A stretch of 64,000 nucleotides of DNA from Cyanophora paradoxa CCMP329 (Eukaryota; Plantae; Glaucophyta). The stretch is taken from the NCBI GenBank assembly GCA_004431415.1, contig QPMI01000596.1:1-64000 (forward strand), given 5' to 3'. Both the position numbers and the translations under genes were made by a program. The notes under the pieces are model-generated. The model saw only the letters and a list, made by a program, of their open reading frames with translations. It ran no database searches and had not been told where the DNA came from. Shown here piece after piece: positions 1-16,499 of the stretch (positions within the stretch are counted from its first letter, which is position 1; every line of letters begins with the position of its first letter).

Positions 1-51
1 CACAATCAAGTAAGCCTTAAGTATTCTTGTCAAATTTTGGTCTTTTCGATA

Positions 52-147
52 GGTGTCACAGGTGTTCACAGGTTTTTATCGTCCCTGGTCATTTTTCTTT
101 TATAGCCCCCTAGATGGGATGGACCTGTGACACCTGTGAACAACACC
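52..147. repeat. Iteron-like inverted repeat (GGTGTCACAGGTGTTCACAGG ... CCTGTGACACCTGTGAAC), candidate replication origin
   Basis: Two tandem TGT(T)CACAGG units, a ~50-nt spacer, then two inverted units. Lies ~100 bp downstream of the helicase stop. A second copy is at 9586-9674. Confidence 0.7.
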
Positions 148-241
148 ATTTCCAGTAAGGCTATAAAAATACATATACATTTCAATCATAAATCGTTTTG
201 TTTAATATTCAAATCCTCTCCATTGTCTTCTTGAACCCTTG

Positions 242-2520
242 TTATCTTTCGAAGTCCAATGTAGCCCTTGCTCTGGTTCCCTGAATTCGTTTAACCTCTG
301 ATTTCACATTGAAGATTTCCCTTACTCTCTTCATCACAGAAACACATTCAACTTTATCATCGACACTTCTGTATGATTTGTAAATGATATCACTCGAAAC
401 AAAGTCGTTTGCATTATGGGTAACTTCGAAATTATCCCTAAGCCATTCACCAATCTTATCATTTTCAGCTATAAAGTTTATTCCCTGTTCAATAATCGAT
501 TGAGGGGGATTTCTTAAGATCTCTTCAACCTCTTTGTTCTTCCACATATCCAGTAATATCTTCATGTGAGCCATCTTATACTCATCATCATTGTGTAGAA
601 GTGTGAACAGAGTTGGGTCAGCTTTCTTTGACCAGCTTCAGGCTTCTCTCTGAATATATTATTGAATCTCTGGTATGAAAGTCTTCTTTGAATTGCAAAG
701 TCTGGTTTATTTATAGTCAAATTGTCATTAGTTGTAATGTAACCTGAAATTGGAGTAAGGATACTGGGTCTTTGAACAAGGCTCTCACAGTCATTTCATT
801 TCCACCTGTGACCTCCTTAATTTTGGAGATCTGCAGTTTATCACCATCTTCAGCCTCATTACTGAATACAAGTCGCTTTCCAAGGAGTTTGGCAAGTTCA
901 GGAGTAGCATCTGATGAGTTCTTTTTAGGTTTGTCCAATAGGATATTTCGAGAGGGCTATAATAAGCCCCTGAATCTGTTTGCAGTATTCCTGAACAAGT
1001 GATTTACCATTTGCACCAGCACCAGTCCACATGTAGAACTTCTGATTTTGTTGATCCACTGAGCAATTGCAATAGATGCCAGAAGATAGTTTCGCTCTGC
1101 TGGATCATCTACAATCTCTCTATAAATCTGATTGAGATGGTCTACTTTCTTGGGGTCTACATTCTCAGTATAATCATAACCCACACTCTTGCTCACCATA
1201 TCTTCCAGTTTCCCTTTCTGAAAGTCATAGTTGTCAGATCAAATACACCATTATCGAATCCAATTACATATGGAACTGTATCAATCTTTCATAGAATTCA
1301 TCATCATTCAGCAGAGGGAGCAGATCAGTCAGAAGGGATTTGCGATATCCTGATTGTTTAAGATTTTTGGCAATAGAAATTAATGTTTTCGATTTCTCTT
1401 CGAAAGCTGTTCTATTCTCTTCATCCTTCAAAGCTCTTTGGCTATAATGCACAGCCCTGCCAAGGTATTGAGGGACAACAAGGCAACTTATGTCTAGGTA
1501 AATCTTTTGGTTTGTGTCATCATGCTCCCAAATCCCAGTATCAGTATTGAGTTTGAACCATGACTTTTTGGAGTATCTCCAAGTATGTTGTAGTACCTCT
1601 TTGCACACAAGACTGACATCATAATGAGCGCCTCCAGAACCAGCGGATTATCAATGAGATTGAAGATATCAGATTGCATTCCAATGAAGATAAATCGTTT
1701 TTTGCAATTGCCACTGTAGCTGGACACAATATACTTTTTATCTTCTCCTTTGGCTTTCATAACATACCAGTTATTCGATTCATGGGACCATTGCAGCATG
1801 GGCAATTGAAGTCCCTTATTAGCAGCATCAAAGTTAAAGCCAGTTCAGTTTGAGAGATTATATTGGGATGCATAAAGCCCATATCCACCAGCTCTTTAAG
1901 AATACTCTTTTCCAATTCATCATGTGAGGTAGCATTAGCAGTATACTCACTCTTATAGATATAGTTCTCTGCAATCCACTTTTTAAACTCATCAGTAGGC
2001 TCATTGAAATCACAGGTATCATCCCATGGAGCAATTACCCAGGTCTTGTTGACACTGGGACAAACATTAATTAATCCAGAAGTTCCAGTTCCAGTGATTG
2101 TTTTCAGGTCAACCTTTTCAAAGCCTTTAAAGCCTGGAGCCTTATCGGTGATTTTGAGTTTAGTGAACTCCTCAGGTCGTTTAAAGTAGACATGATAGCC
2201 TTTTTTAGTTTTTGCCATGGGCTGATTGGCATCAAAGTCATCAGGAAACATATCCGGAATTTCTCAAAGTTCTCCTCATCATCAAAGTCAATAACCATCA
2301 TGTTGTCTGAGAGCAGAATGCCCCAAGATACATACTGATTAGTTGCCAGCGCTTCCTCATACTTTTCCCAGGACCAAGCACCTCCCTTATGCTTGAAAAC
2401 TGGGTCTTTGCTGTCAGGTTTCACTGGGATAATCATGTTTTTGGCGAGTTCCTCATCAGATCGAAGCCAGTTAGCGAGCGATTTGATTAACTTGTCTGTT
2501 TGGCGTTCATTTTCAGCGAT
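242..2520 (-). pseudogene. PrimPol-type primase + Zn-binding + D5-like SF3 helicase (frameshifted)
   Basis: Consecutive fragments: GILLSDNMMVIDFDD and KTKKGYHVYF (PrimPol motifs), FNCPCCNG, WFKLNTDTGIWEHDD and MVSKSVGYDY (D5_N), WTGAGANGKS Walker A (~995-1030, off-frame in the ORF track), ATPELAKLLGKRLVFSNE...IKEVTGGNEMTVRALF (SF3). The probable start at 2520 reads ATC (M/I-AENE), directly after the promoter motif. Confidence 0.9.
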
Positions 2521-2530
2521 TGGGGTCCCT

Positions 2531-2566
2531 TTTATATATATAGAAGATTTTTCTTTAAGTAGTTTT
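2531..2566 (-). promoter_or_regulatory. Viral promoter motif copy 1 (AAAACTACTTAAAGAAAAATCTTCTATATATATAAA)
   Basis: 35/36 identical to the copy at 3857-3892; ~10 bp upstream of the primase start. Confidence 0.75.
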
Positions 2567-2721
2567 GGGTCCCCCAATCATTTTTTGTTGGAAATCGAGA
2601 AAGTATCCCTACGAAATTTATCCACATGATATATCGAGTGGTTCAGATACAAAAAGGATGAATGGTATTTCAGCGAATAAACAGCATATCCCCAGCCTAG
2701 TAATATGCTGGGAAAAATAAT

Positions 2722-2976
2722 TTAGACATGTTTCGATTTTCTCCCTCTGTTTGAGTAAGGGACATCATACAAATATTTGACAAAGCAGACTGCATTGGCT
2801 GCATACTTTCGCTGACATGAACTTGCTATTTTCATGGCTCTATAGGTATCATCGGTTTGATATAGATCTCTTAGCTGTGTGGCTATTTTTTCGTTAAACT
2901 TTTTGATTTGAGCCTTACCTTTTTCAGTTTGCTGGTACCTCTTCATAGCTCTCTTCTGGGCTTCACTGAGTGGCAT
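2722..2976 (-). CDS. Small basic hypothetical viral protein (MPLSEAQKRAMKRYQQ...)
   Basis: Intact 84-aa ORF preceded by a copy of the promoter motif. Confidence 0.7.
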   Translation of the reverse strand: MPLSEAQKRAMKRYQQTEKGKAQIKKFNEKIATQLRDLYQTDDTYRAMKIASSCQRKYAANAVCFVKYLYDVPYSNRGRKSKHV

Positions 2977-2992
2977 TTTTCCTCTGTCTCTC

Positions 2993-3027
2993 TTAATATA
3001 TATAGAGAATTCTTTAAATCATTTTTT
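2993..3027 (-). promoter_or_regulatory. Viral promoter motif copy 2 (TGATTTAAAGAATTCTCTATATATATTAA)
   Basis: Same TTAAAGA...TCTATATATAT core, ~17 bp upstream of ATG 2976. Confidence 0.65.
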
Positions 3028-3032
3028 GTTCT

Positions 3033-3850
3033 TTAACCTCTCTGTCCAAATCTCTCAATATACATAAGTTTGAAATGCTTACCTAGCAATGCTACAAATG
3101 GTTCGATTTCCAAGGTCTCCCATGTTTTCTTGTCCTTATTCCATCTGCAATCTAATCCTTTTGCGATATCTTTTTTAAGAAAAGGCACCTGAAACCCAGC
3201 AACCAATGTGTTTGTTGTACTGAGTTCTGCATACATTTCAATCAATGCAGATCTACCCTCTCTGAACCTCTCTATATCATCTCTGCGAAGATTATCCATT
3301 TTTGGAATGAACTGGTTGCACCAAATCAGGAAAAGATTAACTGCATGTCTATTCCTTGCTCTTTCTTGTTCTAATTCTCTCTGCCTTCGCTCTCTTTCTT
3401 CTAATTCAAGTTGTTTCTTTCGCTCCTCTGCTTCTTTCTGGATTTGCTTTTTTCTTTCCAATTCCTCCTCCTTTATGATAATCCTGCACTTATTGCAGAA
3501 ATTATCCTTACGGTTTTTATGTCGATCTCCGCATTTCTTGCATATATCTTCCCTCCTTGCACCATTTGGCATAAATCGTTTAATGCAGCAGTTGCCAACA
3601 AGAACCACAATCTTTTTATCCACATGCAAGATGTAGCATTGTTCTTCAATATGATGCTTGCAAGCACAGCTGTTTGAGTGTGGAGGAAGGCTTTCGTGAG
3701 TCAAATCATACTTTGCAAGTTTCAAATACAAAGAGTTCATATATTTGCTTCTCCCCAAAGCGACAAAGTCTTTAAGTTATTAGATCCACAAAGAAACATT
3801 AATGTAGCCTTCAAGCGTTCCAGAGAAGATGTTGCTTTGTTCTCTGCCAT
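3033..3850 (-). CDS. Cys/His-rich Zn-finger protein with coiled coil and C-terminal DUF5710-like motif (one frameshift near the 5' end)
   Basis: CACKHHI...VGNCCIKRF...CKKCGDRHKNRKDNFCNKCR; C-terminal VPFLKKDIAKGLDCRWNKDKKTW resembles DUF5710. ATG at 3850 (MAENK) follows the promoter motif. Confidence 0.65.
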
Positions 3851-3856
3851 TGTCCT

Positions 3857-3892
3857 TTTATATATATAGAAGATATTTCTTTAAGTAGTTTT
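3857..3892 (-). promoter_or_regulatory. Viral promoter motif copy 3 (AAAACTACTTAAAGAAATATCTTCTATATATATAAA)
   Basis: Near-identical to 2531-2566; 6 bp upstream of ATG 3850. Confidence 0.75.
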
Positions 3893-3961
3893 CATCAAAT
3901 TTTTGCGTTCGGAATATCCCCATTTAAAACCTCCCCTTTTAGTAGGAACAAGTTAGGAACT

Positions 3962-4213
3962 ATGCCCCGAATTAGCAACAGACTCATTAGAGAGAAGAAA
4001 TGGGAACTCATGGGATTACTGGGAACACTGTATGCAGCCCATGAAATTACAGAGGCTGAATATGACCGGGAAATCGGATTTATTTCAAGGGGCAGACCCA
4101 CTTTAGCAAAATTAACCAGAAAAGCCAATAACCTCTATGATAAAGTTGAAACTCTTGATGAACTCGATCGCCTGAGGCAAATAGAACCAGAGGCAGAAGA
4201 TGGTACAGCATGA
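3962..4213 (+). CDS. Hypothetical viral ORF, or frameshifted N-terminus (terminal-protein region) of pPolB
   Basis: 83-aa ORF directly upstream of the polymerase fragments; no recognisable motif. Confidence 0.45.
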   Translation: MPRISNRLIREKKWELMGLLGTLYAAHEITEAEYDREIGFISRGRPTLAKLTRKANNLYDKVETLDELDRLRQIEPEAEDGTA

Positions 4214-7187
4214 ATGAATTATATCGCTGGCTCACTACAGAGCCAGAAGGGAAGTTGTTGTTGATGTGATTGAATATTTAGATAGAATTGCAACCTCTCT
4301 ACCAAAACGTTTAAGAGACAGTCTAGATCAATTCAGGGCAATCAAAGTTCGCTTATCGTTTATCTGCAAGTTCGTAAAAGTCAGCAATCCACAGGTTTGG
4401 ATATCGAAATACATTTACAGCGATTATTTTGTATTAACCAAATCGAGAAATATTCGAACTGAGCTGAATAAAGCAGCCCAAATGTGTCAGGAGCAGATGA
4501 ATGTTGTTGATAGCTATCGATTGGAGAGAATCGAAATGCTAGAGTTGCTATTATGAGTTATGCCCCAACTGGTGGTGCTATGTTAAAACACCAGATCAAT
4601 TGCAGCCAAGAGAGCCACAGTGAATATTCGAAATATTGATGATTCTTGCTTCGAAAATGCCATTTTGGCATGGATCCATAGGAAAGATGTAATTCCCACA
4701 AGAGAAGTGAGCTTACACAATATCGCAAATGGAAATACTCACCAACCACATACAATCCTTTGGCTCTCAATTTCGATAACATCCCATTCCCTGTTCCTGT
4801 GATGCTGAAATCATTGATAAATTCGAATCTCAAAATGCAGGCATCAGCATAAACATATTTGGAATGGATGAGATGTTATATATCCCCTACATCAATCCAG
4901 CAACCCAGGCAGAAAGCAAAAGATTAATCTCATGCTCATTCATGATGATGAAGGGAATGGTCACTATATTACAATCATGTCCCTTTCAAGACTTCTCAGA
5001 GTTGCCCTTGATAAAACCAAGGATCAAAAGTTACACTACTGTGACACATGCTTATCTCGATTCAGGTCTGAGGCTAAACTCACTGCTCATGTGGACTCAA
5101 ACAGATGCATTGATTGGAGACTCTCAAAGGGAATCACCCTAAGCCTGAGACCACCATAGAGTTTGGACTGAAAAACCTCAGGAAAACTGTGTGGCTTCCT
5201 GTTGTGGTTACTGCAAGATTGAACATAGAAGCATCCCCATTGATGCATCGAAATCCAAGAGAGAAGTCTCAGCAGTCAACTAGAATAGTCACTGGGGCAG
5301 ATGTTCAAGATTTTCGATTTGAGGGCAGGATCCAATGGGAGGTCTGTTTGAATGCTTGGAGTCCAAAGCAAGAGAACTAATCGATTTCCTGTTTACCAAT
5401 ATTCCCATGAATGAACTCACAGATGAGCAAAAGGCTATTTACAGAGCTACCAAACACTGTTACCTTTGCAGTGAGAGGTTCACAAGGAAAACTTCAAATG
5501 CAGGGATCATGATCACCACACAGGTCATTACATTGCCCTGCATGCAGAAACTGCAATCTCCATAGGAGAATCTCAAAGCAAACCAAAGTTGCAGTTGTTG
5601 TTGACCAAATGGATGACTGTGGGACATTCATTTTCAGAAAAATAGCAGGCATGGGTGATAAAAAGCGAATCGAAATCCTTTCGAAAAATTTGATCAATAT
5701 CTTTCATTGCAATGGGGTCTTTACAAGTTCATTGATGCAAGTAATTTATGGACTTTGGGGCTGCTGATGTAGATGAGTTAATGAGCAAATTCCAGGCTTT
5801 CAGAAGGCTTTCACACTCAGTATATGGATTGGACCCAGTTCATTATGTATCTGCACCTGGGTTATCTTGGGATGCTATGCTTAGGACCACCAAGGCAAAA
5901 ATAGAGCTTATAAGTGATGTAGAGCAATACGAATTTGTTGAGAGGGAATCAGGGGTGGCTTTGCAACAATGCCTTGTAGGTATGCTGAGGCTGATGGTGA
6001 GAACTCCCATATTATGCTGTTTGATGCTAACAACTGTATGGCTACTGCTTGAGTCAGCCTATTCCAGTTGGTGATTTTAGATGGGAGACCGAATTCAACC
6101 CAACAAGATAACAGATCCAGTTTCCTGGAAGTTGATCTGGATTACCCAATTAGCTGTTTCTAGATCACAGTGATTTCCCCCCTAATTATAAACAAGAAAA
6201 TAGTAGAATATGCAGAATTATCACAATATCAAAAGAGCCTATTGGATCTCTCAGGAGAAGAGCTTGATAAGACCCCTAAGCTAACTGCAACCTTTGGTTC
6301 TGTGACAAACTATGTGATTTCTGAGCCTCTTCTACAGTATATTCTGACCAAAGGTGTGAAACTAAAGAAGGTTCACAGGGTCCTATCATTTACTGTGGCT
6401 CCTGTAATGAAACCCTACATTGAGCTGAACACTGATATGAGAAGGAAAGCAGTGAATAAATTCGAGGCTGATTTCTATAACTCATGAATAACTCAATCTA
6501 TGGAAATGCATTGAATCATGTAGAGGTAGATCTGTGGTTAAGATTGCCAACAGTGAGAAACTGTTTATGAAATATGCAGCCTCTCCTTTAGTGAAATCAA
6601 CAAGTCCCATAAGTGAAAGGGCAGTTGCCTTTGAGTTTTACACAAAACATGTGAAGCTAGATAAGCCTGTTGCTATTGGGGCTTATGTTTTGGATACTGC
6701 CAAACTGCATAACTACAAGTTCTTCTATGATACTGTAAGGTCCCAGTGGGCAAAAGCAAAGTTACTATTCCATGATACTGACTCCTTTTGTCTATATATC
6801 GAATCTAAGACCCTACAAAAAGATATAGGGAATATCTCTTATGCATTGGACCTAGGGGGGTCTAACAGAATGACCCCAGGTAAATACAAAAATGAGATGC
6901 CAGGTTCTGCTATATTGGAGTATGTAGGTCTGAGAGCCAAAGTTTACAGTTTCAGAACAGCTGAGATTGAGAGAAGTAAGCTATCTGGGACTTCCACTGA
7001 GGAACTCCAATTCAATGATTTTAAGGAGTGTTTATTTGCAGGTATCAGCAAGACTGTGACTGCAAAGCAGAAGAGAAGGGCAGATCACACAATAATAGAT
7101 ACTGTGAGTAGAAGGGTTGCCCTAAACTGCTTTGATGCAAAGAGATACATCTTACCAGATGGTATTAATTCTGTTCCTTTTAATTAA
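4210..7187 (+). pseudogene. polB: Protein-primed family B DNA polymerase (Polinton/adintovirus type), frameshifted
   Basis: NIRNIDDSCFENAILA; GHYITIMSLSRLL..HYCDTCL; HCYLC..RDHDHHTG (endonuclease-VII-like); YGLDPVHYVSAPGLSWDAML; FDANN (motif A); FY(K)LMNNSIYG (motif B); DKPVAIGAYVLD; FHDTDSF (motif C); EYVGLRAKVYS; DAKRYILPDGINSVPF. Confidence 0.95.
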
Positions 7188-7190
7188 GAG

Positions 7191-8442
7191 ATGCCAGCAA
7201 CTGGAAGAATAGTTAGGAGAACCACTGAGCAACTGCAAGGTAACCTACTGCCTATCACAGTTCCAAAGGAGGAAAAGGGGGAATCTCGAATTGTTAAAAA
7301 GTCTGAAATGAAAGAGCTTGTCCCAGTAGAGATCCCAGTTGCTATTGCAGTGAAAGAAACTAGCAAGATTGCCAAGAGATTCTATGATGTGAGAACTGGT
7401 TACAAAGGGCTTCAAGCTATGAGGCTGAGTTACCAGATGAATCCTACAAGCAGTTGCAAGAGTTCTATAAAAAGCAAGAGGTAGTTCAGATCAATGCACC
7501 TGCTATATCTAGAAAGAGAGATCCCATGGTTCCAATAAGGCAACCCTTGATACCTATGTGATTGATTTGCTCTTTTTCCCCAGCTTATAAGAAACAAAAC
7601 AATGGCTATGATACATTTATGACTGCAATGGAATCAACACTGAGAACTGGATATATCATACCTATAAGGGATAAATCAGCTCTCACTACATTAGCTGCAT
7701 TTAAACAGCTTGAGATGAGAGTAGCAAGACCATAGTAAAGGTTCAATCAGATGCTGGGAGTGAATTCCAAATCGAATATTCCAGAGTATTTATCTAGTAA
7801 TACATAGAACACAAGTGAGTGGAACTGCTGACCACAGAAGCCAAGGTCGAATTGAAGCCTTTAACAAGCAGATTAAGAGACTGATCACAAACTACTGCAT
7901 AGCTAATAACACAGCTAGATTTTTTGATGTGTTAGGTGATATTGAGTATAATTACAATAATACAGTTCACTCAGCTACTAAGATGAAGCCAGGCGAAACT
8001 ACAGAGGAGCATTATAGGTATATAGTGGGATTAGAAGATGAGAGATTCAAGAATCAATAGCTTATCTTGATACCATGCAACCTGGCATGTTTGTTAGAGT
8101 GAAAGTTGAGAAGAACCCCTTTGCTAAAACAGGGTAACAATTGGTCTAGGATGGTTTACACTGTTGATAGTAGGGAGGCTTTAAATTAAGCTAAGGAGTC
8201 CCACTGGTGAGATCATAGATAACAGGTTTGCTTTCCATGAGTTGTTGCCTGTGAATGCAGTTGAGTATCTGGAAACCCCTACAGTAGATGCCTTAGAGCA
8301 AGCCAAAGAAGAAGCCAGGGTTGATGCTGCTATAAGGAGAGAAGGCATAGAAGCTGCTAATGAAGTCCCAGATAAGCCTTTGATAGAGCTAGGAAGGAGA
8401 AGGCTGGGAAAGTTAATAGGGAACTCAAAAAGCTCACCATAG
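7191..8442 (+). pseudogene. rve (retroviral-like DDE) integrase of Polinton type, frameshifted
   Basis: FYDVRTGYKG; YVIDLLF (D); QSDAGSEF (D); GRIEAFNKQIK (E); NYNNTVHSATKMKP; GMFVRVKVEKNPFAK. Confidence 0.92.
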
Positions 8443-9063
8443 CAGGCACACAGAAACTTTCAGAAGTGAATAGCCAGAGATGGTATAGTGACTTTCAGAC
8501 TACTAAGGAGTCATATACAGCCCCTAAACCTCAAAGAACACTAAGAGAGAGGACCAAAACTAGCTAGTTTGCTAGCCGAAAACCGTCTTTTTTCCAAATA
8601 TATGTATGACTGATATACATATATACATATATGCATATGATATACACATTGTCTTGTAGATCTTTTCAAGCGCTTCACAGCGATATGCAGAACGTTGCGA
8701 TTTGATAATCTGGTGATGAGATACAAGCGTTTGAAGATGCCGATTATCGATTTTTCGAGATTTCGGAATGATGCATCATAATGATGTAATAATGATGTAT
8801 CATAAACACATAACATATATAATTCGCCGTGATCGTCATGATCTCCCGAGTTCGATGGTGTGTCATATATATCATATACATATGCATCGTCATTATGACA
8901 TCATTTCGTAACATAACACGTCCGTCATCGTCTTTTTTCGCAGCGAACAGATAAGTGAACAGTTAACGAGACAACTATTGTAATAGTGTACTGCAACAAC
9001 AATTGAAACAAGATATGCGGGAAAGCTATTGAAAGACAATGAAGCAAATTGCGAACAATTAAG

Positions 9064-9142
9064 TGAACAGTTAAGTGGACACCTGTTGGGAGTAGGCAGT
9101 GTCTACTCGTTTATCGTGAAACGGTGTCCACTTAACTGTTCA
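9064..9142. repeat. Perfect 20-bp inverted repeat TGAACAGTTAAGTGGACACC, 39-nt loop
   Basis: Arms at 9064-9083 and 9123-9142; related direct repeats at ~8943-8965 and ~9051-9074. Confidence 0.9.
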
Positions 9143-9585
9143 TTTAACTGTTGACGAAAACCCATGCATTATGACATCATATCATTAAACCACATACAAA
9201 ACACTAAAATGCATGTATCTCTTCACCAACTCATCATGTGACAAAACCAAAAACAGATTCGGAATCTCTTAACGAGGCCTGCCTGACGATGTAAGTATCA
9301 TAGGCTCAATAATTCATATGTTTATAAGCATCTCCCCTTGATTCCCCCTATTATATAATATTTATATTAAAGTGGACTCAAGGTTGACTCATATTAATCG
9401 TAAAAGTAGTAAAAGTATATGGATTTTGTTACGAATTCAATGCAAGGGTTGACTAAGTGGGTTGAGTTGACTCAAATTTCACAGGAAATAACAATGAATC
9501 AGAGTATAAATGCATTTTTTGAATCAACTACACCAACTAACACTGAGATTTTAACAATATATGAGGTCCTTACTGAATATGGTAT

Positions 9586-9674
9586 GTGTCACAGGTGTCA
9601 CAGGTCTATCCAGCTCAAGCCCTATAAAGAGTGATTTTCCCTTTCGATGGGATGGACTGTGACACCTGTGACAC
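9586..9674. repeat. Perfect 18-bp inverted repeat GTGTCACAGGTGTCACAG, 53-nt loop
   Basis: Arms at 9586-9603 and 9657-9674; shares GATGGGATGGAC with the copy at 52-147. Confidence 0.9.
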
Positions 9675-9931
9675 CCAATTATTCATTAAATTCTTAAGGG
9701 TCCCCCTTAGACTCATTAAAACATGAGAAAAACATATCAATTTCATGTATAATTACGATTGGATTCAATAAAAGATCTATTTGTTTTATTAAACAAATGA
9801 ATCTTATATGGATCTTAATCGAGTTAAGCGATATATTTCCGATTAAATGAATTAAATTTAATTAAATTTAATCGAGAAAGTACATGAATATAATATCGAT
9901 TAAATCAATTAACAAAAAGACCAATCACACA

Positions 9932-10204
9932 TAGTAAAATGCGGAGTTTTAACCAGAGGCAAGATCTAATTGAGATTCAGTTATATTATTCGGAATTTTA
10001 TACAGATTATCGATTAACTCAGTAAGACTAATCGGAAAATAAGAGAAATTTACGATAAAATATCGAAAAGAATACAAAATAATCGAAATAAATGAATATT
10101 CGATAAGATATACACAGATTATCGATTGATTGAAATAGAATATACGAGATATATCAACAAAATCAATTAAGATAAGCCGAGGGTTAAAACTCCGCATTTT
10201 ACTA
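9932..10204. repeat. Perfect 23-bp inverted repeat TAGTAAAATGCGGAGTTTTAACC at the element end
   Basis: Arms at 9932-9954 and 10182-10204 around a very AT-rich spacer. Confidence 0.9.
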
Positions 10205-10253
10205 ATGTGTCCCGCCCCTAAGTGCGCCCCTGACCATCCCCCCTCTCGCGCAG

Positions 10254-13200
10254 TTCACGAAGACGACTTCACGCTAATCTCGACGGGCGGCGCCGACCTG
10301 TGCGTGATGCAGTGGAAGCACACATGGACGGGTATGCCACGGGACGAGGAGGAGGAGGACACAGAGATGCGCGTCAACTACAACACGGAGATGCAGAGCG
10401 GTGCCGACGACTTTGCAATTGGCATCGATGAGGGCAAGGACGAGCAGTTCGGCGCCGTCAAGCCGTGGGTCGGCACCATCAACGCCCTTGTACCGGATAG
10501 CTTCATGCCCGACCCGAAGCTGAAGCAGCCGCCGACCGACGAGCTGACGCTCGAATTTGTGCACGGGTACGCGCACACGACGCCCGCCACAACCTCTTCT
10601 ATCTCGGCCCGAAGGACGACGGGAACGCGAGCGAGATCGTGTACCACGCCGCGGCACTCGGCATCGTGTATGACAAGGGAACGCACACGCAGAAGTTCTT
10701 CCAGGGGCACGACACAACATTCTCTCGCTGGCCCTGCACCCCGACGGCCACACAATCGCGACGGGCCAGGTCGGCAGGAAGGCGCCAATCAACATCTGGG
10801 ACGCGCGGATCCCCGAGAAGCCGATCGCGACGCTCCAGGGCCACCAGCGGGGCGTGCCGTGCCTCTCCTTCAGTCGCGACGGGGCTCATCTCGTGTCGGT
10901 CGGCCTGGACGACAACCACATGGTCATCGTGTGGGACTGGAAGGCCAAGAAGAAGCTGGGCGAGAACAAGGGCGGGCCCGACCGCGTCTTCAACGTCGAC
11001 TGCAGCCCGCACGCCGACGGCGAGTTCATCACGACTGGCGCCAAGCACATCAAGTTCTGGAGCGGAGGGCCCGCCAGGCCTGCCGGCAAGCTCGGCTCGG
11101 TCAAGGGCAAGGGCATGACCGACCAGAAGGCCTACCACGCCGTCGCCTGGCTTGACGCCTGTGCGCCGATCCCTCTCGCCTGCCGTGCGCGCGCCCTGAC
11201 TGACCGATCGTGACCGCCACGGCCGTCCATGCGCCGCAGCGACGGTGGTGGCGGGCACGACGGACGGCGCGCTGTACAAGTTCGTGGGCGGCACGGCCAC
11301 AGAGGCGATCCCGCGCACGAGGGCCCCGTCTTCGCCTGCACGTCACGCCCGATGGCTCCAAGGTCTGATTTCGTGAATTTCGGCCGCCGCGTTTAGCTTC
11401 AATCGCTGAAAAAAGGGCGCGCAGCTGCTCTCGGGTGGCAAGGACGGCGCGATCTGCGTCTTCGCAACGCAGGACCTGGGCTCGGGCTCGACCCCTGCGA
11501 AGCGCATCGACCTGAACAAGCAGCTCTCGTCCGACCCGACGGCCTCCGTCACGGCGCTGGCCCCCGCACTGCGGGCACTCAGCGTGAAGGGCAACAAGTG
11601 CTTGGCGGGCCTCATGAGCTCGACAATCGTCGAGGTGGACATCCGCTCGGGCTCCGTCTCGACGCTTCTCGCGGCGCACGGCGCCTCAGGTACCCGCATG
11701 GGTAAGGCCGCCGACTACCAGGGCGAGATCTGGGGCCTTGGCATCGTGCGCCCGCCTTTCCCTCCCGGCCCACTCCTGTCCCGTCCGCATCAGACAGGCC
11801 TCCGGATCCGCCGGCGCCGCGCAGCACCCGAGCAAGAACGAATACGTCACGTGCTCGGACGATTGCCTGCTCCGGTTCTGGGACGTGGCGAGCCGCAAGT
11901 GCACCAAGGCGATAAGGCTAGAGGCGCCAGGCCGCTCGGCGTGCTTCTCGCCGGACGGCGCCCACGTTGCCGTCGGGCTTTACACGGGCGATCTGGAGGT
12001 CTTCGACGCGCGGCGGGGCGAGCGGATTTGCAAGCGGCCGACGGGCGCCGGCAAGATCGCCAAGGAGGAGCTGGGCGAGCTAAAATACAGCCCGGACGGC
12101 AAGTACCTTGCCGTCGGCTCGAGTGACAACGGCATCTACGTCTTCTCCGTCGTCAAGGACTACAAGCTCGCCGGGCGCTGCAAGGGCCACTCGTCGTACG
12201 TGCGGCACCTCGACTGGAATGAGGGCAGCACGGCCATCCAGAGCGACTGCGGCGCCTACGAGCTGCTCTTCTGGTCCATCCCCTCCTGCAAGCAGAACTC
12301 GAAAGCCAGTTCCTTCAAGAACGAGAAGTGGGCCACGCAATCCTGCGTCATCGGCTGGCCCGTCCAGGGTGCGCCACGCCGCATCTCCCGTCCCCTCCTC
12401 CCTCCCCCCCCCCCCCCCCCCCTTCGAATCCCCCCTAGGCCTCCTCCCCCCTTCCCCCGAGAAGTCCGAGCTCACCCGAAGCCGTATGCAGGCGTCTTCG
12501 AGCCCGGGATGGACGGGCTCGACGTCAAGTCCGTTGACCGCTCGAACAACGGGAAGCTGCTCGCCATCGCACCAACTTCCGCTATGTGGCTCTGGCGCAG
12601 TACCCCTGCCTCACCGACGACGTGCGCCCGTTCAGACGCGCTCGCCTCGGAGTCAACGGCGCTGATGGCGCCTCACAGAGCCAGCGGAAAAAGTACAAGG
12701 GCCACTCGGAACACGTGACGAACGTGCGCTGGACGCCGCGGGACGATTACCTCATCTCGACCGGCGGCGCCGACCTCTGCGTCATGCAGTGGAGTCGGCT
12801 AAAGGGTGACCGCACCTCTTCGCAATTGGATGCCGAGTCTCAGCGGGCTACTTCGCAAATCGGTTTTTCCGGATCCGGACCCGGTACCGGTGCTGCAAAT
12901 CGGGTCTTAAGCTTTGAAAGTGAGCTCCAGCCCATTCAGTCTTTCTCAAAGGCCGCATTTGAATTCGACGGCCCGCAGCCATAGACGACAGCTGGATCTC
13001 CACTGAGGGCAGGCTGAGCCTGGCGAACGAGGGGCGGACGGAGTGGCCAACGGCGAAGATCGCGGCGGCGGGCCCCGAGAACATTAGAGTGCTCGACCTC
13101 AGCAGAAACCAGCTCACGAGCATCCCGGGGGCGGAGCTCGCCAAGCTGACGAACCTGGAGGTGCTGCGGTTGGACAACAACAAGTTGACGGCGCTGCCGC

Positions 13201-14990
13201 CCGAGATCGGCCGCCTCGCGACGTTGAAGGAGCTGTACGTGCGCGACAACCAGCTGACGGTGCTGCCGCCGGAGATCGGCCGCCTCGCCGCCCTGGAGGC
13301 GCTGAGCGTGATCGACAACAAGCTGGCGGCGCTGCCGCCGGAGATCGGCCGCCTCGCCGCCCTGAAGGAGCTGGGCGTGAGCGGCAACCAGCTGACAGCG
13401 CTGCCGCCGGAGATTGGCTGCCTCGCGGCATTGAAGAAGCTGGACGTGGGCGGCAATCAGCTTACAGCGCTGCCACCGGAGATAGGGCAACTGACGAATC
13501 TGCAGGAGATGGATGTGAGCAGTAACCAGCTGACGACGCTGCCGCCGGAGGCTGGGCGCCTCGCCGCCCTGCAGTGGCTGAACGTGGGCAGCAACCAGCT
13601 AGAACAGTTGCCGTCGGGAATATGGGAGCTCGCACAACTGCAAAAGCTGTACGCGAACGGCAACCAACTGAAGGCGCTGCCACCGGAGATTGGGCGCCTG
13701 AAGCGTTTGCAACAGCTGTGCGTGGATTTCAACCAGCTGAACGCGTTGCCGCCGGAGATCGGGCACCTCGCGGCCCTGCGGGAGTTGAGCGTGAGCAACA
13801 ATGAGCTAATAACGCTGCCTCCGGAGATGGGGCGCCTCGAGAACCTGGAGCAGCTGTATCTGAAGGCCAACCCCCTCACGGCCATGCCCCAGCACACTCG
13901 GGAATCTGGGCCCTCCGCCCTCGCGCACCTTCGCGCCCTCGCCCTCGCTGTTGACGTCGCGCCGAGCTCGAGCTCTTCTGCACCTCAGCACCCTATCCCG
14001 CAACAGACATCTGCAAACGAAAAGGAGTGGGACTGCTTTGTGAGGTGCGCGGCTGCCAGTTCTTTCGAATTCCCAAAAGTTACTCGCAATCGTGCCCTGA
14101 CACGTACCTGTACATATATATGAATGTACATGTACATTACAGTTACGCTCACGTTGATTCGGAGCGCGTGATGCGCTTTGTTGATCGTATTTCCAAAGAA
14201 GGCTTTTCCGTCTGGTGCGTAGCCCATGGCCAATATTAATTGCAATATCTGTATATAGACGTTAACAGTTTCCTGACTATCGCATAGGACCGATCTGATG
14301 CTTCTACCGGGACGCAACTGGGCCAAAGTACGATCTGCCCTCGCGATCGCTCCTACGAATTTTATCCATCCCTCACGATCACACGTTTGCCGCCAGGACA
14401 TTGCCATTGCAATTGCTCGGAGCCGCACCTTCCTCCTATTCATCTCTCCCGCGTACCTCGCATCCGTGAATTGTATGGACGAGCTCGAGGTAAATCATTG
14501 CTCTTCGAATTCCAAATCTATATATATATATAGTTTGGATCATTCCAATCATTGCAAAGTTTGGATATATATATGCATATGCATGCACCTCTCTTCGAAT
14601 TCTGACGCGCATGCACGTGCAGTACGCGCACCAAGTTGTTCGTCCTCGCCCTGCAAAATACCCCATCTGGCTCTGCCCGGAAAAATCCGTGAAGGTTGAA
14701 GAAGACATGAGCATGTACGTATTTGTATATATATAAAATATAATATACACATGATCTCTACCTTAATATAAATGTTGCCACCCATCTGATCGATATCGCG
14801 ATCGACATTCGCAGGATGCTGGTTCGAGCCAACTGGGCGCGTCCCTTCTTCTTCACCCCAGCTATAAAAATCTCCTCCTGTCTTCTCGCTGACTGCGCCT
14901 CTTCTATAATCGCAGGTGACACAGCAGGTTGAGGCAGAGGCGATTGACTTCCTCATCCGCGGTCTCCGGAAGAACCTCCGTGGCTTGTAA
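10254..14990 (+). CDS. EML (EMAP-like, HELP/WD40) protein 3' part fused to an LRR array and a TIR domain; multi-exon, 5' part outside the window
   Basis: LISTGGADLCVMQW twice, LTLEFVHGY (HELP motif), GHSSYVRHLDW, YKGHSEHVTNVRW. In-frame intron 12920-12978 joins to ~12 LRRs (LxxLxVxxNQLTALPPEIG). TIR exons: DCFVSYAHVD...GFSVWTD...PGRNWAKDIAIAIARSRTFLLFISPAYLASVNCMDELEYA. Stop at 14988-14990. A few single-base frameshifts in the EML exons. Confidence 0.85.
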
Positions 14991-16499
14991 CATGAAGGCT
15001 TACGACTCGCGATCACAAGGCTTTCACTCTCGTAGTTCTCCCGGGTCCCGTTTTCGCTCTCGTGGTTCTCCCGTTTTGTTTGAGTTTCTGAGCTAGTGGG
15101 GAATCAATGAATTCGAAGATTGGCGAACCCCACGGGCCCTTGAAAAGGTGACTAGAACCTCTTCGGATCAAGGCTCCTGAACTATCCCAGAGACCCCACA
15201 ATGAAATAACAAAGCACCAACCTCGGGCTTCCCAAGAGCAGCGAACTGCCCGTCCCAGTTATGGCCGTGCTTCCCAACCAAGCCAGGGAAGTCGGCCGCA
15301 AAGGGCGGAGTCTTGTTATTGACAGAAGATCCCTTGGAGTCTGACATTTTGAGCCTAAAAACGCGGGTTTTGATCAGCACCAAGATTCACAAGAATCAGG
15401 GGAAGGGATCGTAGGAATCAGACTCAGGGCACCAGATGAACGTGAAGTGCCTCAGGTGGTGAACGCGTCGACACCGAGCTCGCTGCAGCTTTGCAGCGAT
15501 CCGGTGCGCTCCTTAAAGTGAGCCCGAGCTGCGAAATCTGCCGGTTTAAGATTTGGCCCAATCATCCGACCGGGGTACACCCTTCAATTACCCGTCGCCC
15601 GAAAAAGACGTCCGGCGACCAATCACCACGCTGGGTTTCAGCCAATGGTCACGCACTGATTCCGATCCTAGTGAGGCTGCAGCCTGCAGCTGCAGCCTGC
15701 GACCGGCAGCTGCTGCAGAGGCTGCCACGTGCAAGACCTGGCACTGCGGTCAGCCGCCGCAGTGCCGCCGTAGACCGGCGCTGCCCGGTAGTACTCGACG
15801 ACTACCTGCTGGCCATGTAGCTCGATGCTGATAGATACGCCGTTACCCTCGATGCCGTTATCAATCTCGAGACTCGAGGATCGGAGTCTGCACCAGCTTC
15901 AAGCCGACTCGAGCTTATCAGGCTCGTAAAGATAATTGCGTCTATTTGTTTTTTTGGTGAATTACCGGCCACAGTCTCTAGACACCAGCACTGCGGGGGC
16001 TGCCCAGTCTAGCTTCTTGAGCTAGTTAGCTATATTAGTGCACGCATAGTATTCCGATTCTCTGTGCCACGTTGTGGCCTACCCATACCCGTTGCTGCCT
16101 GGCTTAAACCCTAGGCTAGCCTACGCGGTAGTACTGCGTGCAACGCCAAACCTTCGAAAGCTTCACACCTCGATTATTCCGTACGTGAGGCTTGATAACT
16201 GAAATATAATATTCAGTCGAAAAAGCAATCCGGGTACGGCCATACGGCCTTAACACCCTTCAATTTCATTTATCTACGCCCTTCGCGCGCCATTTGTGGC
16301 CTAGACGTCGACGTTGACCATACCATTTCTTTGCATGATCGCTGAATCGCTCTACGGTCTTTAAATTTCATATTAATAGCCACGTTCTCTCTAGATCTGA
16401 ACTCAAACTCTACGAGAGCGGTCTGATCATGACCTGCCTTGGCCTCGGGGGCCGAAACCGGACCCAGAGTGCAGAAGCGTACGCAACACGAGCTTCTGC

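Follow-up and report, generated by a model that had tools for sequence, protein, structure and literature searches.

A calpain-EML duplicate apparently joined in frame to an LRR-TIR gene in Cyanophora paradoxa: a possible integrated-domain receptor interrupted by a Polinton-like element

Several plant NLRs carry an integrated domain, as in RRS1-WRKY and RGA5/Pik-HMA, in which the duplicate of a host gene lies in frame with an immune-receptor scaffold. In the 64-kb stretch of Cyanophora paradoxa analyzed here (contig QPMI01000596.1, hereafter the window), a duplicate of a calpain-EML gene is followed, in a frame compatible at the DNA level, by a member of a leucine-rich repeat (LRR)-TIR family. 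We propose, with a probability of about one half, that this duplicate was fused by read-through with the downstream LRR-TIR gene, and that the fusion was once functional and selected but is now interrupted by a Polinton-like element. The likeness to plant receptors would be one of working principle only: unlike them, the window gene has no NB-ARC, its integrated part exceeds 2,000 aa and is N-terminal, and no helper partner is known.

Toll-like receptors also place LRRs before a TIR, but they possess a signal peptide and a transmembrane (TM) helix, both missing from the window gene, which is predicted to be cytosolic; moreover, their TIRs are generally not NAD+-hydrolyzing enzymes (NADases). 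The TIR NADases (SARM1, RUN1/RPP1, BtTir, Cat1, and ThsB of Thoeris) share TIR_2 motifs and the glutamate of an alpha-C C-x-x-E-L motif, which is required in these enzymes (PMC9153377). The window gene is a candidate NADase only and has no SAM or NB-ARC through which oligomers could form. In human EMLs, lattice binding requires a trimerization domain and a basic region, while the TAPE domain binds soluble tubulin (PMC4761370). Animal EML5 and EML6 share with the C. paradoxa calpain-EML gene tandem HELP-WD (TAPE) domains without a trimerization coil.

Layout of the locus and origin of its two halves

Window exons and published models were searched individually with Pfam, the protein models of relatives (P numbers) being taken from the EukProt Cyanophora paradoxa set, and the whole TIR was represented by the natural paralogue P0002. 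The predicted layout of the full gene is calpain CysPc-C2L, TAPE, TAPE, LRR, and TIR, for a product of up to ~2,700 aa if its 5' half is whole. An earlier note on this DNA had described an EML-LRR-TIR gene starting at 10254 and unlike any described protein. The gene begins further upstream, its 5' half being located outside the window and separated from the window exons by a mobile element, and its architecture is larger, with a calpain and a first TAPE upstream; this architecture was indeed not found elsewhere in a limited search and is apparently lineage-specific. Among 267 fetched EML/WD40 proteins, a limited sample, LRRs occurred only in the two models of this locus and a TIR only in P0135, an unrelated 1,376-aa TIR_2-WD40 protein found among the EML matches. 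The EML, HELP, WD40, LRR, and TIR pieces that the note had listed are all present, with Pfam matches on the exons and an LRR exon of 354 codons. The features are as follows.

10254..12792, plus strand: EML exons with the last blade of TAPE 1, linker, HELP, and complete TAPE 2 (Pfam Beta-prop_EML, EML_2, HELP; exon-wise alignment)
12793..12919, plus strand: read-through beyond the parent's stop position (parent QWRREK, copy QWSRLKG...), a non-coding-like linker with a third-position GC content (GC3) of 0.48
12920..12978, plus strand: predicted junction intron, GT..AG, in frame; alternative donor at 12806 (published model g19956); acceptor matching the family sequence before the start codon
12979..14044, plus strand: LRR exon with family N-cap, 12 LRR strands, C-cap, linker, and first TIR strand (Pfam and alignment)
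12981..12983, plus strand: ATA at the position of the family's initiator Met (alignment with 8 members; short-read contigs)
14143..14214, plus strand: TIR exon 1, best match to the P0002 TIR
14288..14327, plus strand: TIR exon 2 (BB-loop region, PG motif), match to the P0002 TIR
14397..14489, plus strand: TIR exon 3 with C-x-x-E-L (Pfam TIR_2; 50% identical to P0002)
14623..14714, plus strand: TIR exon 4, match to the P0002 TIR
14815..14836, plus strand: TIR exon 5, absent from the earlier exon list, followed by an intron needing a GC donor at 14837
14916..14990, plus strand: last exon (alpha-E helix) with TAA stop at 14988-14990, the same exon as in the published model g19956

The EML exons are 88% identical in amino acids (596/678 residues, exon-wise) to residues ~1509-2235 of the parent, P0013 (tig00000042_g15425), a protein of 2,239 aa with a calpain CysPc whose triad is intact (C126, H292, N320), a C2L, and two TAPEs. 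HELP, Beta-prop_EML, and EML_2 were found on the window exons as well as on models P0016 and P0170, which makes this part EML5/6-like. The association of a calpain with two EML TAPE domains in P0013 is itself unusual and was encountered neither in the calpain literature searched nor in the protein search; among the matches listed by the calpain-region search, there was no other calpain-EML protein of 1,230-3,900 aa at E 1e-60. The N-terminus of the gene is the calpain, not the trimerization coil and basic region of EML1-4-type lattice binders, and region 560-830 of the parent had no Pfam family match, no dedicated coil prediction having been run. Microtubule anchoring, as suggested in the earlier note, is thus unsupported, and since lattice binding in human EMLs needs trimerization and basic regions rather than the TAPE, which binds soluble tubulin, "tubulin-linked" is a safer term than "microtubule-anchored" (PMC4761370). 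Over the three EML exons, copy and parent differ by 108 letters, at least 49 of which change a residue, with a ratio of non-synonymous to synonymous substitution rates (dN/dS) of ~0.23; judging from its sequence, the copy probably went through a period of translation and selection. The frameshifts of the EML exons were considered as pseudogene lesions and rejected, as short-read contigs show consensus errors of the window, which lacks letters present in these contigs (two gaps in 10294-10925, and behind 11309, 11334, and 12568).

The LRR reading frame (354 codons, 12981-14042) displays the family N-cap W-x4-G-x-L-x-L...WP...AGPENIR and 12 LRR strands, each of 23 aa and variable at its exposed positions. 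Used as a query, the N-cap retrieved 12 proteins (P0001-P0012), all named like C. paradoxa models (tig00000042, tig00000841, and others), with swappable parts comprising TIRs of two or three subtypes, SAM-TIR, RING, a doubled LRR block, or others. The family members are clustered on contigs and contain neither NTPase nor TM. Stand-alone LRR-TIR genes (tig00000841_g4736, i.e., P0002, and tig00000042_g15426, g15427, and g15431) share the N-cap and the 23-aa LRRs; compared to them, the window copy has lost its start codon, is placed behind a calpain-EML, and has more repeats. The LRR or LRR-TIR genes g15426, g15427, and g15431 have gene numbers that closely follow that of the parent g15425 on tig00000042. 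The window TIR belongs to the subtype of g4736 and not to that of g15426, and modules were therefore shuffled. Literature searches on Cyanophora TIR/LRR, on LRR-TIR in algae, and on calpain-WD40 returned nothing relevant; the searchable literature seems to contain no description of the LRR-TIR, LRR-SAM-TIR, and LRR-RING family, which was found only as automatic gene models.

The TIR exons individually match the P0002 TIR (43-50% identity per exon), which has itself a TIR_2 match at E 1.7e-19. Exon 3 is so short (31 aa) that its TIR_2 match (E 2e-4) does not reach the curated cut-off, and its match to the Cat1 TIR is weak (E 0.13). The five introns named in the earlier note are all GT..AG with consistent phases, but completion of the TIR requires two further introns (14715-14814 and 14837-14915). 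The catalytic-type glutamate reported in C-x-x-E-L (NCMDEL) is encoded at 14481-14483. This residue is required but not sufficient for NADase activity, TIRs of Toll-like receptors also align with this glutamate, and the motif alone makes the window TIR a candidate NADase. As the earlier note had observed, TM and NTPase domains are absent: no exon or model had a Pfam family match to a STAND NTPase (NB-ARC/NACHT), and inspection revealed no TM helix or signal peptide between LRR and TIR, where the linker is a polar Ser/Pro/Gln stretch. AT-rich (TA)n stretches occur in the TIR introns (14045-14814), whereas the EML introns are GC-rich.

At the junction, both the stop of the first gene and the start of the second are lost. 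The parent ends with QWRREK after its last blade, whereas in the copy the following stop is absent and the sequence continues into the LRR-TIR. ATA (Ile), confirmed in short-read DNA contigs, occupies position 12981, where 8/8 aligned family members have Met, four residues ahead of the cap Trp. The junction acceptor corresponds to sequence read as P-A-G ahead of this Met in three family members, and removal of 12920-12978 would join FE-T-IDDSW in frame with compatible phases. Models P0016 and P0274 also join EML to LRR, from a donor at ~12806, and miss most of the TIR; being automatic predictions, they were not counted as splicing support. An RNA loose end at 12792 was considered as the parent's C-terminus and rejected, since it is a mixed consensus of three records and P0013 ends with QWRREK.

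The upstream half, the inserted element and expression

The locus is interrupted upstream of the EML exons by a mobile element, with the following features.

1..10210, strand not assigned: AT-rich Polinton-like element (GC content, inverted repeats, Atlas matches, high copy depth), with its left end ~480 nt before the window start
10211..10216, plus strand: 6-bp target-site duplication CCCGCC, deduced from the g19953/P0170 protein tail
10217..10253, plus strand: 3' remainder of the interrupted intron, with CTGAC branch motif and CAG acceptor

The possibility of a 5'-truncated EML fragment was rejected as the 5' half was found. Model P0170 (g19953), numbered directly ahead of g19954 on the same contig (tig00021289), encodes most of the calpain and a first TAPE that is 88% identical to that of the parent. 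P0170 ends at TNVK, precisely where the first exon of the window resumes with FTKDD, while the parent P0013 reads across from TNVK to FTKDD. To obtain its read-through tail, R-H-T-stop, the 6 bp at 10211-10216 must be duplicated and the element end must follow in mirrored form. Therefore, the element was inserted into an intron that belongs to the calpain-EML copy and that measures ~77 nt when empty. P0170 lacks parent residues 1-183 (including the catalytic Cys) and roughly 600-826, a gap at the level of the model; the calpain His and Asn are present, and the model begins past the Cys position.

The element has an estimated length of 10,693 nt (~10.7 kb) and a GC content of 0.36-0.41 versus 0.62-0.75, and presents inverted repeats at 117-160/9568-9611 and 9932-9973/10163-10204. 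Its open reading frames (ORFs) include a pPolB-like one (6534-7187), an integrase-like one recognized by eye only (7191-8060), and helicase-like pieces; they are in pieces over positions 1-9000, probably partly through consensus errors. Atlas matches include DNA_pol_B_2 and Preplasmiviricota. A pPolB, terminal inverted repeats, and a 6-bp target-site duplication, the latter deduced from the protein tail, are all found, as in Polintons and Polinton-like elements. The ORF fragments had no Pfam match, no viral contig related to the polymerase was found, and no capsid gene was noticed in the ~10.7 kb, although no search aimed at capsids was made. A 39-nt direct repeat is present at 2528/3854, and the right end (9926-10210) folds back through arms 9927-9973 and 10163-10210 and terminates with ATGTGT. 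Contigs labelled as RNA, 1.3-3.3 kb long, extend to this right end. Another repeated element begins near the 3' end of the gene, where DNA depth climbs 4-7-fold right past the stop codon (15016-15400).

The mean intron of the C. paradoxa genome is 86 bp long (PMC6704402), so that an intron of 10.8 kb would likely block the transcript. The sequenced strain probably does not express the gene. The parent and the LRR paralogues are present in two RNA assemblies, in which no contig covers the TIR region (14031-15015, zero depth). At the listed EML differences, RNA carries only the letters of the parent, translating to parent residues, and the fraction of the stretch's words present in four RNA runs is 0.01-0.02.

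One fused gene or two neighbors

That the locus is an assembly chimera or a gene-prediction artefact is very improbable. It is present on two contigs, as P0016 (tig00021289_g19954) and P0274 (tig00021290_g19956), both automatic models of this locus, and the window contains many indel errors. However, ~90% of its words are found in twenty public runs from a single organism, and contigs of two DNA runs from different studies match 12763-13139 and 13350-15170 without any difference. These contigs bridge the EML-LRR and LRR-TIR junctions, hence the adjacency is genomic; the chimera was rejected and this explanation is largely refuted. The contigs of the two models have identical residues and different error positions, and are probably redundant (assembly overlap) since DNA depth approximates that of the single parent. 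A rather unlikely alternative is that two neighbors never formed one functional protein, a calpain-EML duplicate having been killed by the insertion beside an LRR-TIR gene dying separately without its ATG, with an in-frame link arising by chance in a gene-dense genome. With its 190 nt, the spacer is in line with the dense packing of genes (mean intergenic gap 770 bp; PMC6704402), 9% of shuffles contain an open read-through of 63 codons, and the LRR genes beside the parent are separate models. An AT drift is also visible between window A/T and paralogue G/C (A>G 48 vs. G>A 25). On the other hand, the LRR-TIR part lacks another suitable start (ATG 12830 is usable only with a weak donor at 12837), and 1,159 open codons (482 LRR-TIR and ~680 EML) are retained without nonsense change. 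Under a simple model, neutral decay would yield this with P <= 0.024 for the start and the LRR-TIR part alone, and with P <= 3e-4 when both start and stop are lost; a selected fusion making the ATG dispensable gives 0.09-0.3 for the same pattern. The loss of both signals with all remaining frames open favors a once-selected read-through fusion, and it is plausible that EML, LRR, and TIR shared one reading frame, which was probably selected.

Several observations weigh against a fusion that was once functional. The junction intron 12920-12978 of the earlier note is GT..AG and in frame, but RNA does not support it: the splice is seen in no read and none is listed in the two RNA assemblies. Six in-frame GT donors precede the acceptor, the published model uses 12806, and no CTRAC-like branch motif was found for the acceptor. 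The in-frame junction alone is weak evidence because shuffled spacers yield an in-frame GT in 64% of cases (a strong donor in 8.5%); the lesion pattern is stronger. The last TIR intron (14837-14915) needs a GC donor and GC3 of the TIR is 0.60 versus ~0.9 elsewhere, which, with the AT drift, would fit relaxed selection. The upper bound for dN/dS on the copy's own branch is 0.46-0.77, and selection on the EML copy does not demonstrate selection as a fusion. Adjacency of g15426, g15427, and g15431 at the parental locus is one of gene numbering only, and the window TIR and C-cap differ from g15426, so that the locus is not a simple copy of the parent's neighborhood. A fusion that is still alive, with the element spliced out with the intron or transcription restarting in or after the element (a TAPE-LRR-TIR close to the model of the earlier note) under unsampled conditions such as infection, seems improbable. 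The frames are all open and the splice sites largely intact, RNA contigs extend to the right end of the element, the paralogues are themselves low in RNA (depth ~9-11), and plant TIR genes are infection-induced (PMC9153377). Furthermore, only two RNA assemblies were examined and contigs show presence, not absence. Nevertheless, so long an intron is unlikely in this genome, the RNA runs contain few of the words, and no RNA contig covers the TIR.

A possible receptor and its significance

In a fusion by read-through, the calpain-EML gene would have been duplicated and the copy, having lost its stop, would have been read into the downstream LRR-TIR gene. The short intergenic stretch would have become linker and intron, using the acceptor that the family has ready just ahead of its ATG, and the redundant ATG would have decayed to ATA. 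The product would most probably have been an integrated-domain immune receptor, in which the calpain/EML copy served as bait for, or reader of, a pathogen factor or a change in free tubulin. The LRR would hold the TIR apart until triggered, whereupon clustered TIRs would hydrolyze NAD+, leading to a signal or to cell death. Drawn by analogy, these sensing and NADase steps are tentative, somewhat less than evenly probable even if the fusion was real. The ~10.7-kb Polinton-like element later entered the upstream intron and probably silenced the gene.

A bolder and doubtful proposal is that the NTPase-free LRR-TIR family captures whole neighboring host genes as integrated baits, through the splice acceptor before its start codon. 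The calpain-EML-LRR-TIR would then be a tubulin-linked NADase sensor, expressed or intact in element-free strains, and the integrated-decoy strategy would have evolved independently in a unicellular alga, where an endogenous virus would have inactivated one receptor.

Should the copy be dead, it would be a curiosity of one genome. If the fusion is or was functional, a receptor gaining an integrated host domain would be caught in the act, with its parent, its donor family, and the lost stop and start still visible, in an early-branching archaeplastid and without the NTPase of NLRs. Such a receptor would suggest that pathogens of protists target calpain-EML or tubulin. For experiments, the LRR-TIR, LRR-SAM-TIR, and LRR-RING family around it represents the better target.

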